From assembly GCA_907165135.1 (NCBI GenBank), contig OU015571.1, positions 1-9,225 on the forward strand: a stretch of 9,225 nt of DNA, written 5' to 3'. Source of the DNA: Oikopleura dioica (Eukaryota > Animalia > Chordata). Both the position numbers and the translations under genes were made by a program. Shown in pieces: positions 1 through 9,225 of this stretch. A model generated the notes under the pieces. That model did not search any database. It saw only the letters and a program-made list of their open reading frames with translations, and was not told the DNA's origin. Within the stretch, counting starts at the first letter, position 1; the number at the start of each line of letters is the position of its first letter.

Positions 1-298
1 GTCTTAACACAATGTAAAATATTCTTCCAGAAACAGATTCTACATAAGCAATTATATATATAGTAGGCACTAAACTTACGATGACGAATAAAAAAGGGGA
101 TAAAGTCCAAGTAAATTCAACCATTCTGTACCCGTATTTTCTTCTTACAGATTTAGTAGGACGGTGGTTAAAGTTTCTTCTAACAAAGGAAAAAGAAACT
201 ATAATAGTAGTCAATACAATTATTAGCCATAAAGAGAAACTATGAAAACTAGTTCGCAATAGTGAACTCCAATTAATATATTTTAAAAGCCTAGACAA
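1..298 (-). CDS. cox2: Cytochrome c oxidase subunit II, 5' part (runs off window start)
   Basis: Uninterrupted table-13 frame ...SFHSFSLWLMIVLTT...GMVEFTWTLSPFLFVIVSLVPTMYMIAYVE..., matching the COX2 'FH' and 'E-x-x-W-T-x-x-P' motifs. Start uncertain: TTG at 298, or ATT at 324 if the T4 run at 309-312 is really T5. Confidence 0.9.
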   Translation of the reverse strand, partial: MSRLLKYINWSSLLRTSFHSFSLWLIIVLTTIIVSFSFVRRNFNHRPTKSVRRKYGYRMVEFTWTLSPFLFVIVSLVPTIYIIAYVESVSGRIFYIVLR

Positions 299-319
299 AT
301 TTAACGTTAAAAGGCGGTA

Positions 320-466
320 TTAATTTTTTTGGGAGCTATTAACTGTAATCGGACAAAACACTTTTAATTTCTTCTTAAAATATGTTGTATGTCGATTAAT
401 GAAATATAAAGTTTTATACTGCCGTTGACATGTCTTTGAATAAAAGTTTATAGCACAAAATGTAAT
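320..466 (-). CDS. Short unassigned ORF (48 aa); speculative detached nad1 C-terminal piece or atp8-sized ORF
   Basis: Open frame ATT(466)..TAA(320): ITFCAMNFYSKTCQRQYKTLYFINRHTTYFKKKLKVFCPITVNSSQKN. It fills the cox2-atp6 gap. LKVFCPITV weakly resembles the ND1 C-terminal WKNFLPLTL. Confidence 0.25.
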   Translation of the reverse strand: MTFCAINFYSKTCQRQYKTLYFINRHTTYFKKKLKVFCPITVNSSQKN

Positions 467-497
467 TTAAATTATACTTAAAATGATTTAATTAAAA

Positions 498-1007
498 ATT
501 ATTCTGTTTTTTTTAACATTTTTTTACTTTTTAAGATTAAACAGAACAACTAGTTTTCTAGCTCTCCTATTTTTGTAGCCTTAATAGTGATTAGTAGAAA
601 TGTTATAAAAATTATTACACTTTCAGACAATATTTTCATAGGCATTGTTGTCCTAAAGACTTGACTACTAGGAAAAGATACTCAAATATTAGAAGTTTAA
701 AAGATTTATGTCAAATTTCGCTATAGATTTATCCGGTTTTTTTAATTTCTGCTGTAGAAATATGTGGTCAATTAGTTCGTCCAGTGTCTTTAACATGTCG
801 TTTAAGATCTAATATTTCCTCCAGACATTTATTAATAAGTATATGTACTTCTTCTACATATTTTTCTGTCAATTTAGCTCCAACCAGGTTTATTATATGG
901 TTCCTATTTATGCCAAGATACTTAATATTTGAAATTGGTGTTGCTCTTATTCAAAGTTATGTCTACAGTTTTTAATTTCTGACTACAATAAAGAATGCAA
1001 AAGATAA
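498..1007 (+). CDS. atp6: ATP synthase F0 subunit a, shortened (~169 aa), frameshifted at homopolymers
   Basis: VEMCGQLVRPVSLTCRLGSNISSGHLL and FEIGVALIQSYVYSF match the ATP6 R-L-x-x-N-x-x-x-G-H and E-x-x-V-A-x-I-Q-x-Y-V motifs. The frame is continuous if T8 507-514, T7 519-525, T5 570-574, T7 737-743 and T5 969-973 are read as T6, plus two unplaced +1 nt near 675-720. Stop TAA 1005-1007. Confidence 0.88.
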
Positions 1008-1040
1008 AAAAATGGAGATACACAAATAAGACAGACTTTT

Positions 1041-2078
1041 TTAGATAAAGTAAGACATAAAATATGTGACACTAGTAATTTGACTTATTAAAACATAAGG
1101 ATCTTCAACTGGTATTCTACCAGTGACAGTTAAAATAAAAAAGGATAAGATAAACACTCCTATATTGCTTGAGTTTGTTCCACTTTTACGAAAAATGGCG
1201 TAAAGAATAGGAAAGACCACACTAAGAACTAAAGCTAAAACTCTAACAACTTTAGAAGGAATGCAACGTAAAATAGCGTAAGCAAATAAAAAAGAAAAAA
1301 AAAAGAAAAATACCATTCTGGCTTAATGTGAAGAGGAGTAACTAGAGGGTTTGCAGCTAGATAGTTTTCAACATCTCTTAGAAGATTTATTAAAACCAAT
1401 ATTAAAATAGCTCTAATGATTCTATAAAAGTCCAAGTACACATATCTTTTATAACAAACAGAGGAATAAAGTATTTTTGTCTACTCTCATATTAACAGAT
1501 CTATTAGATCTAGTTACATGTAAAAGAAGGGTGTGTCTAATAACCAGAACAGTTAAAATTAAAGGAAGTAAAAATGGAAAGTAAAAAAGCGTTTAAGAGT
1601 ATAGGTACTAACTGTATATGAACCCCAAATAGCAATACATAGTAAAGGTCTTACGAAAGGCACAATACTAGCCAAATTAATAATTACTGTGGCTCTCAAT
1701 AAGACATTTGTCTGTAAGGTAATACATACCTTAAAAAAGCGGACCTTATTCTAAGTAATAGAATAATGCATCTACTAATCCAAAGTTTGGTCTTATTATA
1801 GCCATAGTAATAAATCCTACGAAATAGGTGTAGAAACATAAAAAAATAAGTTAAGAAAAATGAGGCTCTATTGGCATGACAAAAACGTAAATTACTTCTA
1901 AAATCTGTATTACGCATGTAAAAATCAAAGCATCAAAGGATTGTCTAAAATGCATAGTTAAGATGACTCTGGTCAAAATTTGAAATCTTAGGACCAATCC
2001 TAATCTAGATCTTTGATTCCACCATAAATTAATGGAAGAAGGAACAAAAACAACAGAACGTTTTTTAATGATAATTAT
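1041..2078 (-). CDS. cob: Cytochrome b (~341 aa after correction)
   Basis: Motifs [57 protein letters not shown]. Needs removal of 17 nt at 1288-1310 and +1 nt at about 1920, 1697, 1570, 1474 and 1426. The corrected length of 1026 nt is divisible by 3. Start ATA 2078, stop TAA 1041. Confidence 0.95.
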
Positions 2079-2939: not shown

Positions 2940-4430
2940 ATTCTACACAGAAGAAAAAAAGCTTAAATTTACAAAGGATTTTATTATGCTCAAAATTTGA
3001 AATAAGGGGTTTTATTAGTCTTAAACCACTTTTTTGTTGCACCTATAACTATAGGTGCTCTAAAAATATTTGTGAATTTAGCCTAGGAAATGTAAGTTTC
3101 AGATGCCTTTATTTTCAATTTTATGTTTGCTTATACTAGGTTTTCATCTATTACTTTCTTCTTTGTGTTTATAGTATAAGGCATTAATCATAAAGGAAAA
3201 GGGAAGAGGAAGAAAAGAAAGGAAATAGACGGAAGAATTCAATATAAGCAAACATAAAATTGAAAATAAAGGCATCTGAAACTTACATTTCCTAGGCTAA
3301 ATTCACAAATATTTTAGAGCACCTATAGTTATAGGTGCAACAAAAAAGTGGTTTAAGACTAATAAAATCCCTTATCTCAAATTTTGAACATAATAAAAAT
3401 CCTTTGTAAATTTAAGCTTTTATTGTTGTTGTTTATGGTAAGATGCTTTTATTCTACACGAAAAAAAAAAAAAGAAAAGCTTAATTTACAAAGGATTTTT
3501 ATTATGTTCAAAATTTGAGATAAGGGATTTTATTAGTCTTAAACCACTTTTGTTGCACCTATAACTATAGGTGCTCTAAAAATATTTGTGAATTTAGCCT
3601 AGGAAATGTAAGTTTCAGATGCCTTTATTTTCAATTTATGTTTGCTTATATTGAATTCTTCCGTCTATTTCCTTTCTTTTCTTCCTCTTCCTTTTTCCTT
3701 TATGATTAATGCCTTATACTATAAACACAAAGAAGAAAGTAATAGATGAAAACCTAGTATAAGCAAACATAAAATTGAAAATAAAGGCATCTGAAACTTA
3801 CATTTCCTAGGCTAAATTCACAAATATTTTTAGAGCACCTATAGTTATAGGTGCAACAAAAAGTGGTTTGAGACTAATAAAACCCCTTATTTCAAATTTT
3901 GAACATAATAAAAATCCTTTGTAAATTTAAGCTTTTTATTGTTGTTGTTTATGGTAAGATGCTTTTATTCTACAAAAAAAAGCTTAAATTTACAAAGGAT
4001 TTTTATTATGTTCAAAATTTGAAGTAAGGGGTTTTATTAGTCTTAAACCACTTTTTTGTTGCACCTATAACTATAGGTGCTCTAAAAATATTTGTGAATT
4101 TAGCCTAGGAAATGTAAGTTTCAGATGCCTTTATTTTCAATTTATGTTTGTTTACTGTACCTATCTCCCTCCCATTATTTCTCTTCTTTTCTTTGCTTAT
4201 ATTGTAAATAGCAAAATTTAAGACAAAAAAAGAAAAAAGAAGAAGTAGATGGAAGAATCTAATATAGGCGAACATAAAATTACAAAAAAAACGCATACGG
4301 ACATCTGAAATTTACATTTTCTAAGGCAAATTTACAAATATTTTAGAGCACCTATAGTTTAGGTGCAAAAAAGTGGTTTAAGATTAATAAAATCTCTTAT
4401 TCTAAGTTCTAAACATAATAAAACCTTCTG
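2940..4430. repeat. Non-coding control-region-like array: three ~515-bp tandem units, each an ~180-bp inverted repeat pair around an ~107-bp loop
   Basis: Arms F1 ~2956-3135 / R1 3243-3421, F2 ~3475-3650 / R2 3758-3937, F3 ~3974-4154 / R3 ~4263-4430 (degenerate). Direct spacer ATTGTTGTTGTTTATGGTAAGATGCTTTTATTCTAC after 3421 and after 3937. Confidence 0.95.
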
Positions 4431-4451
4431 TTATTTCAATTTTTTTTTTTT

Positions 4452-5957
4452 TTATAGAGTTCTAGAATAAGGACCTTCTTCCCAAGAATGTATTTTGGTA
4501 GGCAGTCTGAATATTTGATCAACAGGTAATACATATCTTATTGTGGACACTAAATTAGACAAGTTACTTTTTAAAGACCATAATATTACAATTGTAGAAG
4601 CAATAGTAACTAATAAAGACCATCTAATTAGACGATTTGTTCCTACTATTAAAGGTGAATAATGGATGTAACGACGAGGCATTCTTTCAATTCTTAGTTT
4701 ATGTATAGGAAAGAATACTCTATTTACTCTTAAAGAAAATACTATAGTTCTTACTATTATAGAAGTTTCCATAATGTACAATCTAGAGAATACAGGCCAA
4801 TAATGAACAGATCTTATTACTACAGCAGAAGTGGCTCTTATACTCAAAACATAGTGGAAATGAGCAACAACGTAGTAAGTATCATGCAGATCTAAATCAA
4901 TTGTAGCACTACTACAAACAATTCTGGTACATCTTCTTAAAGTAAAAACCAAATAAATAATACAGCCCAAATTAAAGGTAATGTTACGTATAGATTGTTT
5001 GAATTGATATTGGCTAACCAAGTAAAAACTTTTACTCTAGTAGGAATTCTGATTATAATAGTGGCAGCACTAAAATACATTTTAGAGTCTGTGTCTATTC
5101 TGGCAGAATATATATGATGAGCCCAGACAACAAATCTTAAAAACCAATTCTTATAATAGACCATATCATACCGTAATAACCCCACATACGAGCAGAATCA
5201 ATGTTAAACTCAATTACATGACTTAATAGTCTAAATCTAGGTAAAATAAGTACATATACTTCTGGGTGCCTAAAAACCAGAAAAGATGTTGAAATAATAA
5301 AGCATCTCTTCTACCTCTGTATTCGAAAAAGCTTGTTCTAAAGTGACGGTCAAATAAGATTATAGTAATAGCTCTAGCTAAAACTGGTAATGTAGTTAAC
5401 AATATAAAACTTGTTACTAATATACACCATAGAAATAGAGCAGCATTATAAATTTGTGTTCTTTTGGAGAATTTAAAATTATAGTTACTATAAAGTTGGC
5501 ACTACCTAAAATAGAAGAAACTCTGGCACAATGTAAACTGAAGATTACCATATCTATACAATTTTCACTAGTGCTTAATGGAGGATAAATAGTCCAACCT
5601 GATCTTGTACCTCTTGATTTTATACTTTGAACTAAAAATATGGAGGCTGGCATCATTATCCAAAAGAAAAGTTGTTTATACGTGGAAAAGATATGTCTGG
5701 AGTAGTTACAAAAAGAGGGATTAACCAATTTCTAAATCTTCTAATTAAAAAAGGCATAATAAAGAAGAAAACTATTACAATTCTATGCCTAGTAACTACA
5801 GTATTGTAATGATGATTAGTTAAAACACTAGTTCTTGGAGATATTAACTCTAAACGAATTAGTCTAGATAAGGAAGTTCTAATTAAAGCAAAAATAGTCT
5901 AAGTGTTTGGTATAACACTCTAATATCTTTATGGTTTACGGAACATATCCAACGAAT
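4452..5957 (-). CDS. cox1: Cytochrome c oxidase subunit I (~503 aa after correction)
   Basis: [65 protein letters not shown]. Six +1 corrections (5890-5894, 5662-5665, 5450-5452, 5272-5276, 5139-5143, 4944-4948) give 1512 nt. Start ATT 5957, stop TAA 4452. Confidence 0.97.
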
Positions 5958-5962
5958 TTTTT

Positions 5963-6573
5963 TTAGTTTATAGATCTTATAACTCTTATCCAAATTATGG
6001 TTAAGGTTTCACTTAAAAATAGCAATGTAAATCTAACTCTTCTATAATTAATATTATATCTACTTACTAATTCACTTTCTCTTTCAGATAAGTCGTAAGG
6101 AGAACGTCTAGACTCCACTATTAAAACCACAAATAAAAAGCTTTCATAAATAAGGAAAGACTTCTATAAACATATAGTGACCAAACAATAGATATTCTTA
6201 ACAATATATCTAAACATATACCAAGACAAAAAAATTCGGAACATTCTTAATAGCCTAAAAGAAGAATCATTAAAAAATCTGACTCTCAACATAATAATGC
6301 TAAAAATCTGGATACAAAAATAAAAGTATAGTAATTGTACCTTATAAGTAAAGCTATAAACCTAAAAATTATTAAAATAAATCTAATAGAAAGATCAGAG
6401 GTTTTTCTTCAAGATTTTGTGAAAAGCTTTCTTCTATCTACCAAAGCCTGTATGATACCATACAATCTGGTGGTACGGGGTCTAGTACGATTTTGAGTTA
6501 ATCTCAATATAAATCGTTCTATTATGGTTACAAAAGCAATAAAAACTACAAAGAATAATCTAAAAACTTTAAT
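5963..6573 (-). CDS. nad1: NADH dehydrogenase subunit 1, C-terminally truncated (~203 aa)
   Basis: [57 protein letters not shown]. Needs T5->T6 at 6302-6306 and 6135-6139, and T7->T6 at 6228-6234. Stop TAA 5963-5965. Confidence 0.92.
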
Positions 6574-6574
6574 T

Positions 6575-6638
6575 TGCAACACCTCTTTTGAGGATCTTAA
6601 GATTATAAGTCTTACGTTTTATACTTAAACTATGTCGC
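6575..6638 (-). tRNA. trnM(uau): tRNA-Met, anticodon UAU (reads AUA)
   Basis: Cloverleaf: acceptor GCGACAT/GTGTTGC + A, D-arm GTTT/AAAC, anticodon stem TAAGA/TCTTA with loop CT-TAT-AA, T-arm CCTC/GAGG. trnM(UAU) is a known tunicate mitochondrial feature. Confidence 0.9.
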
Positions 6639-6640
6639 TG

Positions 6641-6714
6641 AGTTTTACCGAAGACTCTGGCACTTCAATTTTATCCTAAAATAATAAGTAATTATTCAAA
6701 ATTTATGAAAACTA
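6641..6714 (+). other. tRNA-like cloverleaf with atypical anticodon loop (possible degenerate tRNA-Gly)
   Basis: AGTTTT/AAAACT acceptor-like stem, GAAG/CTTC D-like stem with a GG-containing loop, ATTT/AAAT stem around TATCCTA (TCC central but A33/T37), extra AATAA/TTATT arm. Confidence 0.3.
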
Positions 6715-6721
6715 TTTTTTC

Positions 6722-7595
6722 TTAGAAATAAGCAGCATTTCTAACATAAAATAGGGCGTACAATCTAATCCATACTACATCGACAAAATGCCAATACCAA
6801 ATACTTGAAACTAATCTTACAGCACGTCTATTTCTTATATCTCTTTTGGATCTACGTAACAAACTCCATACTAAAAAGACACTCTAATAATAACATGTGC
6901 TCTATGAAATCTTGTTCTTAAGAAGAAGACAGCTCTATAAATTCTGGTTATAATAGTATATTTAGCATCTAAATATTCTTTATATTGTAATTTAACAAAA
7001 ATAGTCTTAATAAAATAGAAAATACAAATCTTATTTTAAAATAGCTTTTTATTCTAGCCTTTAACCTATGATATCTAAATGTAGCATGAAAACCGCTAGT
7101 AATTAGGACAGCTGTATTTACTATAGGTACCCCGAATCTATCGATAAGTTCTATACCTATTCTACGGTTGTTTGGGAATCTTCTAGAGTACTGGTCTTCA
7201 GAAATAAAGCTATTACAATAGCCCCAAAAAAGAAAAATGCTAAAGAAAAGACAAGCTTCACTTACTAAAAAGAACTTTATACCTAATTTTAAATTAGAGT
7301 GAGTTTTCACTGTATGAAATATAGGCTCTGTAGCCAATTTCAAAAACCAATTAAATATTCTAATGAAACTTATAGAAACTAAAATTAAAATTACTTTTTC
7401 AATTCTCAAAAGACCAAATAATCTTAAGAGTCTTGAGGAAAGTTCAGAAACTTCTCTTAATTCTGGCCTAATTTTATAAGCAAATTCTACGTAGTCTACT
7501 CCGGATATCCAAGTCCATAGGCACATTAAAGCAACCCAAACACTTAAAGATCTGGTTAAAGGCATAAAAGATGGATATATTATATGTTGTCTAAT
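6722..7595 (-). CDS. cox3: Cytochrome c oxidase subunit III (~289 aa, with a large insertion)
   Basis: HMMYPSFMPLTG, GMKFFLVSEA, NTAVLITSG, GFHGAHVIIG, WYWHFVDVVW. Needs T5->T6 at 6997-7001 and 6873-6877. Stop TAA 6722. The ATT start at 7595 is tentative. Confidence 0.93.
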
Positions 7596-8843: not shown

Positions 8844-8882
8844 TTTTTTCTCTTCTTCTTTTTTTCTTTTCTTTTTTTTTTT
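8844..8882 (+). repeat. C-interrupted poly-T tract preceding the tandem repeat
   Basis: TTTTTTCTCTTCTTCTTTTTTTCTTTTCTTTTTTTTTTT read directly from the sequence. Confidence 0.9.
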
Positions 8883-9225
8883 GATTTTCTGCTATTAAGC
8901 AATCAAAAATTTATAAGGATTTTTCACTTATTTTGAACAAAATTTTTGGCCTAGTAAAGAGGTATCTCATAGTATCTAAAAGAGATAATAAATTTCCTTT
9001 CAATATTTTGAAAATTACGTCAAAATCGCAAAATTTCAGCAATTTTAGGCTCCATTTTATTTTGCCATTTTATAAAATATTGTAAGGTTTAAAGTCTTTT
9101 CTTTTTTCCTGATTTTCTGCTATTAAGCAATCAAAATTTATAAGGATTTTTCACTTATTTTTGAACAAAAATTTTCGGCCTAGTAAAGAGGTATCTCATA
9201 ATATCTAAAAGAGATAATAAATTTC
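8880..9225. repeat. ~228-bp tandem repeat (about 1.5 copies visible), non-coding region
   Basis: TGATTTTCTGCTATTAAGCAATC starts at 8882 and 9110; GGCCTAGTAAAGAGGTATCTC at 8948 and 9177. The second copy is cut by the window end. Confidence 0.93.

Follow-up and report, generated by a model that had tools for sequence, protein, structure and literature searches.

Editing of poly-A/T stretches in the mitochondria of Oikopleura dioica, by which poly-U is reduced to 6U, is reportedly documented in Denoeud 2010. At a classic site of this kind, a perfect T6 is kept and a C/T stretch of 2–509 nt, ending at the first purine, is excised (Klirs 2024, PMC11384887). In O. dioica, 59 of 65 sites have been confirmed in RNA as 6U, and a few unedited ESTs occur (PMC11384887). 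In the Okinawa population, every T run longer than six in a coding gene is a 6-mer in the transcriptome (Dierckxsens 2024, PMC11384890), and non-T insertions inside the tracts, the presence of which was confirmed by reads, are removed as well (PMC11384890). In the HiFi genome of this population, deposited as PP146516, cob (5787–7021) and cox1 span 1235 and 1767 bp and contain 7 and 5 edited n-mers, respectively (PMC11384890). An irregular site has been reported in the cytb gene of Norwegian O. dioica, in which TTTTTCTT is followed by an excised AACTT (PMC11384887).

Two other processes resemble this system in part. In kinetoplastid U-deletion editing, runs of U are likewise removed from mitochondrial pre-mRNA and reading frames are restored; however, that editing is directed by guide RNAs, acts on U only and leaves a U count that is set for each site, whereas in Oikopleura a fixed six U are left and Cs are removed too. 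We know of no guide RNAs for the poly-U trimming of Oikopleura. Transcriptional slippage by bacterial or viral polymerases also takes place at long A/T runs, needs no guide or splice signal, and might in addition explain the strand specificity of the Oikopleura sites and, via U–G wobble, their tolerance of C. Ordinary slippage yields heterogeneous lengths, whereas the Oikopleura product is reported as exactly six.

Gene content and provenance of the window

The DNA analysed here (the window) is a whole stretch of 9,225 nucleotides. Using translation table 13 and Pfam, we identified cox2 (partial, minus strand), atp6 (plus), cob (minus), cox1 (minus), nad1 (minus), cox3 (minus) and nad4 (plus). 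On the minus strand, the order is nad4(R)-cox3-tRNA-nad1-cox1-(repeats, unassigned ORF(R))-cob-atp6(R)-cox2, which is the published order for O. dioica (Table 1 of PMC11384887; text of PMC11384890). The genes end in TAA followed by A runs, as has been reported for the Okinawa genome (PMC11384890), and AGR is used for Gly, as in the ascidian code. Sense-strand T runs of at least 5 exceed A runs of at least 5 in every gene, whichever strand it is on (13:2 in cob, 9:1 in cox1 and 10:2 in nad4), and T runs longer than six are few in the window as written.

A previous draft from Okinawa by Bliznina et al. (2021), whose mitochondrial scaffold is chrUn_12 of OKI2018_I69, is 9,225 bp long and contains all reported genes except nad5 (PMC11384890). 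Its scaffold carries cob, cox1, nad1, cox3, nad4, cox2 and atp6, with T-rich interruptions and a repeat-rich non-coding region beside cob (PMC8008620). By its length, gene set, gene order, repeats and missing nad5, the window is almost certainly this published Nanopore draft of the mitochondrial scaffold of Okinawa O. dioica. Features outside the protein genes are as follows.

6574 to 6639, minus strand: tRNA between cox3 and nad1 (Rfam, 37.7 bits), the only tRNA found
2950 to 4453, no strand: non-coding repeat region separating cox1 from the unassigned ORFs beside cob, composed of tandem units of ~515 nt that contain long inverted repeats
8844 to 8882, plus strand: second long C-containing tract, 39 nt, a perfect T6 followed by 33 C/T (six Cs) and ending at G

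A single tRNA-Met stands at the place of this tRNA in the published O. dioica map (PMC11384887, Table 1). Its anticodon loop, CTTATAA, suggests by eye the anticodon UAU (Met in the ascidian code). ARAGORN, run on the window in bacterial mode, returned no tRNA and missed the one at 6574–6639. A repeat region similar to that at 2950–4453 has been described for the draft scaffold and for the Okinawa genome (including in PMC8008620). Its units contain near-perfect inverted repeats (e.g. with 235-nt arms that are 98% complementary), with A/T runs at the unit borders, and the copy number given by this assembly for the ~515-nt units is probably not to be relied on. At 2129–2820 on the plus strand, opposite to that of cob, three T-rich ORF fragments follow one another; none has a Pfam match, and they occupy the place of ODI_mt_ORF196 / putative nad2 in the published maps. 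The tract at 8844–8882 has the classic published form. Like nad4, which it follows downstream, it is on the plus strand, and its location is one in which rnl or the beginning of the control region would be expected. Within the last 340 bases, a direct repeat (GATTTTCTGCTATTAAGCAATCAAAA...) is present on the plus strand at 8883–8990 and 9110–9225, with a T-rich tract before each copy; it is probably the edge of a large repetitive control region.

The poly-T tract in the PEWY motif of cob

The tract that is the subject of this study is defined by the following features.

1041 to 2078, minus strand: cob (cytochrome b), 1038 nt in the window, with the stop codon TAA at 1041–1043 running into A6
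1288 to 1310, minus strand: poly-T tract in cob, T5 C T10 C T6 on the coding strand
1311 to 1321, minus strand: 5' part of the PEWY motif, CCA GAA TGG TA, i.e. the Pro, Glu and Trp codons and the first two bases of the Tyr codon, directly 5' of the tract

The initial annotation had described the PEWY motif of cob as split at 1288–1310 by a 23-nt, C-interrupted poly-T. The sequence, the tblastn frames and the Pfam matches all agree with this description, which was exact as far as it went but left unstated that cob lies on the minus strand: the plus strand of the segment reads A6 G A10 G A5, and the minus (coding) strand T5-C-T10-C-T6. All 23 bases are thus T or C. PEWY is the Qo-site motif, and the first T of the tract (1310) is the third base of its Tyr codon. 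The 3' flank reads A TTT GCT TAC GCT ATT TTA CGT on the coding strand, and its leading A at 1287, the first purine after the tract, completes the Leu codon TTA once the frame is restored.

In tblastn searches with the ascidian code, the upstream match to cob (frame −3) stops at ...HIKPEWY and the downstream match (frame −2) begins with FLFAYAILR, from 1292; the reading frame of cob switches exactly at the tract. The ORF at 1235–1441 (minus strand) was placed by Pfam on positions 2–21 of the Cytochrom_B_C profile and that at 1041–1316 (minus strand) on positions 17–102, and because of these profile positions the two cob ORFs can be taken to abut, with nothing missing between them. Reducing the 23 nt to T6 means a loss of 17 nt, which restores the frame and joins the two ORF fragments, as had been proposed. 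A dinucleotide shuffle of the window would be expected to contain 0.03 all-pyrimidine runs of 23 nt; in the window itself they were observed at four loci, among which only 1288–1310 sits within a recognized coding gene.

When the tract-spanning ORF (1235–1441, minus strand) was looked up in public assemblies for independent DNA copies, no record was returned. In metagenome contigs, K-P-E-W-Y codons with 13 or more pyrimidines directly behind them gave 8 matches, all of them due to chance and located in GC-rich sequence other than cob. An Rfam scan of the window for structured RNA (group I/II introns and others) matched only the one tRNA. A group I/II intron or another catalogued RNA element was rejected as an account of the tract, a 17-nt pyrimidine run being incapable of folding in such a way.

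Comparison with transcript-like sequences

Searching for homologues of both cob fragments, we recovered uninterrupted counterparts of the PEWY region in several sequences that appear to derive from RNA. Proteins P0001–P0004 are 86–96% identical to the window and read PEWYFLFAY through this region; their source is given as "merc", which we take to be the catalogue of marine eukaryotes built from Tara metatranscriptomes. Since the MERC assemblies P0004 and P0009 hold internal jumps (P0009 skips 9 cox1 residues), they were never used as the sole basis for placing a frame break.

A close relative is represented by L012, a JGI contig that was reached via P0011, of which only the cob part (~1020–1971) was used. 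On the same contig, a scramblase-like ORF (136–1014, minus strand) is joined to cob, most likely as the result of a chimeric assembly. The cob of L012 is 82% identical to that of the window in nucleotides and 95.7% identical in amino acids. At the PEWY codon it reads GAA TGA TAT TTT TTA TTT GCT, with exactly six T, and in a base-by-base alignment the window has exactly 17 extra bases at the tract. Seven T runs in L012 cob are exactly six long, and no run exceeds this length. Between the two genes, 117 codon differences are synonymous and 13 non-synonymous, and 114 of 160 differences fall at third positions, a substitution pattern that shows cob to be a functional gene under purifying selection.

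Two further contigs, L001 and L002, come from a more distant appendicularian (50–55% amino-acid identity) and also have T6 at the PEWY codon (TGG TAT TTT TTG TTC GC). Their cob sequences of ~1 kb contain 20 (L001) and 25 (L002) runs of exactly six T, none longer and only 1–2 of five. In cob, the hexamer sites of this lineage, one of which is at the PEWY codon, are about threefold more numerous than those of O. dioica. At 525–550, L002 keeps a 14-nt, frame-breaking T6-GCCCCTTC-T6 where L001 (~335–345) has a single T6; judged from this pair of contigs, the segment looks like a mis-edited or partly edited purine-containing tract. T runs of exactly six and none longer are what is expected of RNA from a hexamer-editing lineage, and from these T-run spectra and the poly-A end of L002, rather than from library records, we infer that L012, L001 and L002 are RNA-derived.

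Taken as proxies, L012, L001, L002 and the MERC proteins suggest that RNA of the source animal would have T6 at this codon. The claim that the tract must become exactly six U is supported by the T6 of the transcript-like contig L012 and by the uninterrupted RNA-derived proteins. Applied literally to the assembled tract, the classic rule (keep the first perfect T6) would produce T5-C-T6, which is in frame and reads PEWYFSFLFAY; this was rejected because L012 and all of the RNA-derived proteins are without the two extra residues.

Homopolymer collapse in cob and cox1

Outside the PEWY tract, the cob gene of the window differs in length from its relatives at six sites.

1920 to 1924, minus strand: T5 where T6 is needed (ALIFYMR); T6 in L012
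1570 to 1574, minus strand: T5 where T6 is needed (FHFLLPL); T6 in L012, L001, L002 and P0004
1474 to 1478, minus strand: A5 against A6 in L012, a single-base deficit that breaks the frame
1426 to 1429, minus strand: T4 against T5 in L012, a single-base deficit that breaks the frame
1697, minus strand: G against GG in L012, where TGG AGA encodes the Trp-Gly of SYWGATV; the one missing base is not in a T run
1840 to 1860 (~1851), minus strand: extra-base site, TTTTTCTT AACTT A T7 in the window against TTTTTCTT A T6 in L012

The first five are single-base, frame-breaking deficits relative to L012, and we infer the T5 at 1920–1924 to be an edited n-mer that was collapsed by base-calling. At the last site, six nt of the window are absent from L012 and the frame is kept; the AACTT (5 nt excised) has CTTA direct repeats on both sides. 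With the deficits filled and the 17 nt and 6 nt removed, cob reads through for 339 codons to its TAA and contains T6 runs at exactly seven places; its start is uncertain, an A6 run being present at codons 5–6.

The same kind of defect was found in cox1.

4452 to 5957, minus strand: cox1, 1506 nt in the window, with six single-base deficits
5890 to 5894, 5272 to 5276, 5139 to 5143 and 4944 to 4948, minus strand: T5 where T6 is needed, the sixth T restoring the conserved LFFALIG, HLFWFFGHPEVY, GIGFLGFVVWAHH and IWFFTLGG
~5654 to 5676 and ~5466 to 5485, minus strand: single-base deficits outside the hexamer sites

Automatic greedy repair of cox1 yielded six breaks, all +1, but at arbitrary positions, and the positions given here were therefore set by reading overlaps and then verified. 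The fifth break is backed by P0009, which reads NNFSFW. With the six deficits filled, cox1 consists of 503 codons plus TAA and an A run, and contains exactly five T6 runs.

Together, the two genes have twelve inferred hexamer sites. In the window, six of these are T5, four are T6 and one is T7; the twelfth is the PEWY tract. Because the removal of bases from RNA cannot mend a one-base deficit, T5 at a site that needs T6 is an assembly error. The cob and cox1 genes of the window (1038 and 1506 nt) are ~200 and ~260 bp shorter than their spans in the HiFi genome of the same population, and the numbers of T6 runs in our models, 7 in cob and 5 in cox1, equal the published n-mer counts, as a match of counts and not site by site. 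Poly-T lengths in the earlier Okinawa draft have been described as unreliable owing to Nanopore base-calling and polishing (PMC11384890). The short-tract appearance of the window is a product of homopolymers collapsed in the Nanopore assembly, and the real DNA has long tracts. The deficits outside the hexamer sites (G for GG, A5 for A6 and T4 for T5) are generic long-read deletion errors, and hence no ORF of the window is trustworthy as written.

The PEWY tract is probably the long tract that partly survived this collapse, its true length being greater, and its run lengths, and perhaps the exact positions of its Cs, are those of an assembly whose homopolymers demonstrably cannot be relied on. 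As assembled, it opens with T5-C, and the six other sites that need T6 and have T5 are in the same assembly; the leading T5 is probably an under-called T6 or longer. If the leading run is truly T6 or longer, then the site fits the classic rule, in which the 5' T6 is kept and the pyrimidines are dropped up to the A at 1287.

Comparison with described editing sites

With the poly-T sites of O. dioica, the locus shares a sense-strand T tract in a protein gene that consists of C and T, ends at the first purine and restores the frame when reduced to six U. It belongs to the same species complex and the same gene, Okinawa cob having seven such sites from which non-T bases are also removed. It differs in that the tract as assembled opens with T5-C, whereas a classic site opens with a perfect T6, a difference that is probably due to Nanopore under-calling. 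The proposal that 1288–1310 is an Oikopleura-type poly-T to 6U site holds, given the C/T composition, the purine end and the T6 of L012, and such sites have been published for the same species. The internal Cs, to which the initial annotation had drawn attention, are not a new feature, as excised C/T tracts and removed non-T insertions are both published (PMC11384887, PMC11384890).

The Norwegian cytb AACTT site is a further likeness, in that tracts with non-T bases, even purines, leave cob RNA, and its motif is also present in the window at 1840–1860. Unlike the PEWY tract, which lies ~540 nt downstream of it, this site contains purines and keeps the frame.

Evaluation of alternative explanations

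We conclude, with a probability of roughly 0.9, that the window is mitochondrial DNA of O. dioica from Okinawa and that 1288–1310 is one of the seven known poly-T insertions of cob, which are trimmed to 6U in RNA. The DNA would carry a C/T tract after the PEWY Tyr codon, and everything beyond six U would be absent from the RNA, giving UGG UAU UUU UUA UUU GCU and a normal protein.

Assembly error alone, with a true T6 in the DNA at the PEWY codon and 17 bases introduced by base-calling or polishing, is very unlikely, even though the assembly is wrong at many homopolymers. The frame-breaking errors that can be checked are all one-base deficits, and extra bases occur only at the tract and at the AACTT site, which independently agrees with a published edited site (PMC11384887). 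Furthermore, the HiFi work reports seven cob tracts longer than six, with non-T insertions verified by reads (PMC11384890), and the T6 count of our model reaches seven only with the PEWY site as one of them.

The initial annotation had seen in the window a genome of mostly short tracts, which could represent a mild or early stage of editing in another species. Taken literally, the window does hold only a handful of T runs longer than six, but this reading is not sustained and we regard it as highly improbable: 6 of the 11 other hexamer sites are T5, which is beyond repair by deletional editing, and single-base deficits are found also at A6, T5 and GG. In addition, both genes fall 200–260 bp short of their spans in the HiFi genome of this population, at 1038 nt rather than 1235 for cob and 1506 rather than 1767 for cox1, and the authors of the draft themselves warned of unreliable poly-T lengths (PMC11384890, PMC8008620).

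It is scarcely credible that the window is a nuclear copy (NUMT) or a decaying pseudogene in which the frame breaks are genuine damage. There are six such breaks in each of cob and cox1, as damage would produce, but all are in short runs and are single-base deficits, and the comparison with L012 (117 synonymous against 13 non-synonymous differences, 114 of 160 at third positions) argues against decay, as do seven genes and a tRNA in mitochondrial order, TAA/poly-A gene ends and AGR for Gly. Retention of the tract in mRNA, with the ribosome coping by programmed frameshift or by the kind of bypass that occurs at yeast mitochondrial byp elements, would suit the slippery U-rich sequence at the frame change but can be dismissed almost entirely, since transcript-like contigs, close and distant, carry precisely T6 at this codon and are free of longer T runs throughout, and 59 of 65 sites of the same species are 6U in RNA (PMC11384887).

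Possible mechanisms

As to how the tract would be trimmed, we tentatively favour co-transcriptional realignment, at somewhat less than even odds. The U-rich 3' end of the nascent RNA would slide forward along the A (purine) tract of the template, where U would find a partner in template A and, through wobble, in template G (a C in the sense strand), but none in template pyrimidines. Under this proposal, wobble on template G would cause Cs to be skipped, and the lack of pairing with pyrimidines would let the first purine end the skipped stretch. Two single cases, both read from assembled sequence, appear to fit: the AACTT site with its flanking CTTA direct repeats, and the T6-GCCCCTTC-T6 of L002, in which each T run would be as if cut to six and the G-containing piece copied.

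The main alternative, post-transcriptional cleavage followed by pyrimidine trimming and religation, is almost as probable and matches the published rules equally well. It also matches the rare unedited ESTs (PMC11384887), which suit either model.

A stronger form of co-transcriptional realignment can be drawn if the tract is correct as assembled, i.e. opens with T5-C and has no perfect T6 at its 5' end. Combined with the hexamer common to distant lineages, the AACTT/CTTA site and the leftover in L002, such a tract would mean that no T6 signal is recognized and that realignment proceeds with U–G wobble and halts at template pyrimidines. We consider this unlikely; if true, it would supply a concrete, testable mechanism for an editing system whose enzymes are left unnamed in PMC11384887 and PMC11384890.

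Implications

The PEWY tract is a rediscovery of a known system in the very species in which it was described, the removal of non-T bases and the seven tracts of cob having already been published. Its first lesson is one of caution: the window looks short-tracted only through the collapse of homopolymers in Nanopore base-calling and polishing, and because of this collapse nothing on the evolution or "stage" of the editing can be read from the contig. Two small additions leave the general picture unchanged. The hexamer at the PEWY codon is common to a divergent, heavily edited appendicularian lineage, and the AACTT site of Norwegian cytb is present in Okinawa DNA too and appears conserved. For annotation, the locus offers a clean example of how the mitochondrial genes of O. 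dioica are to be read, with the T tracts cut to six and the Cs removed.
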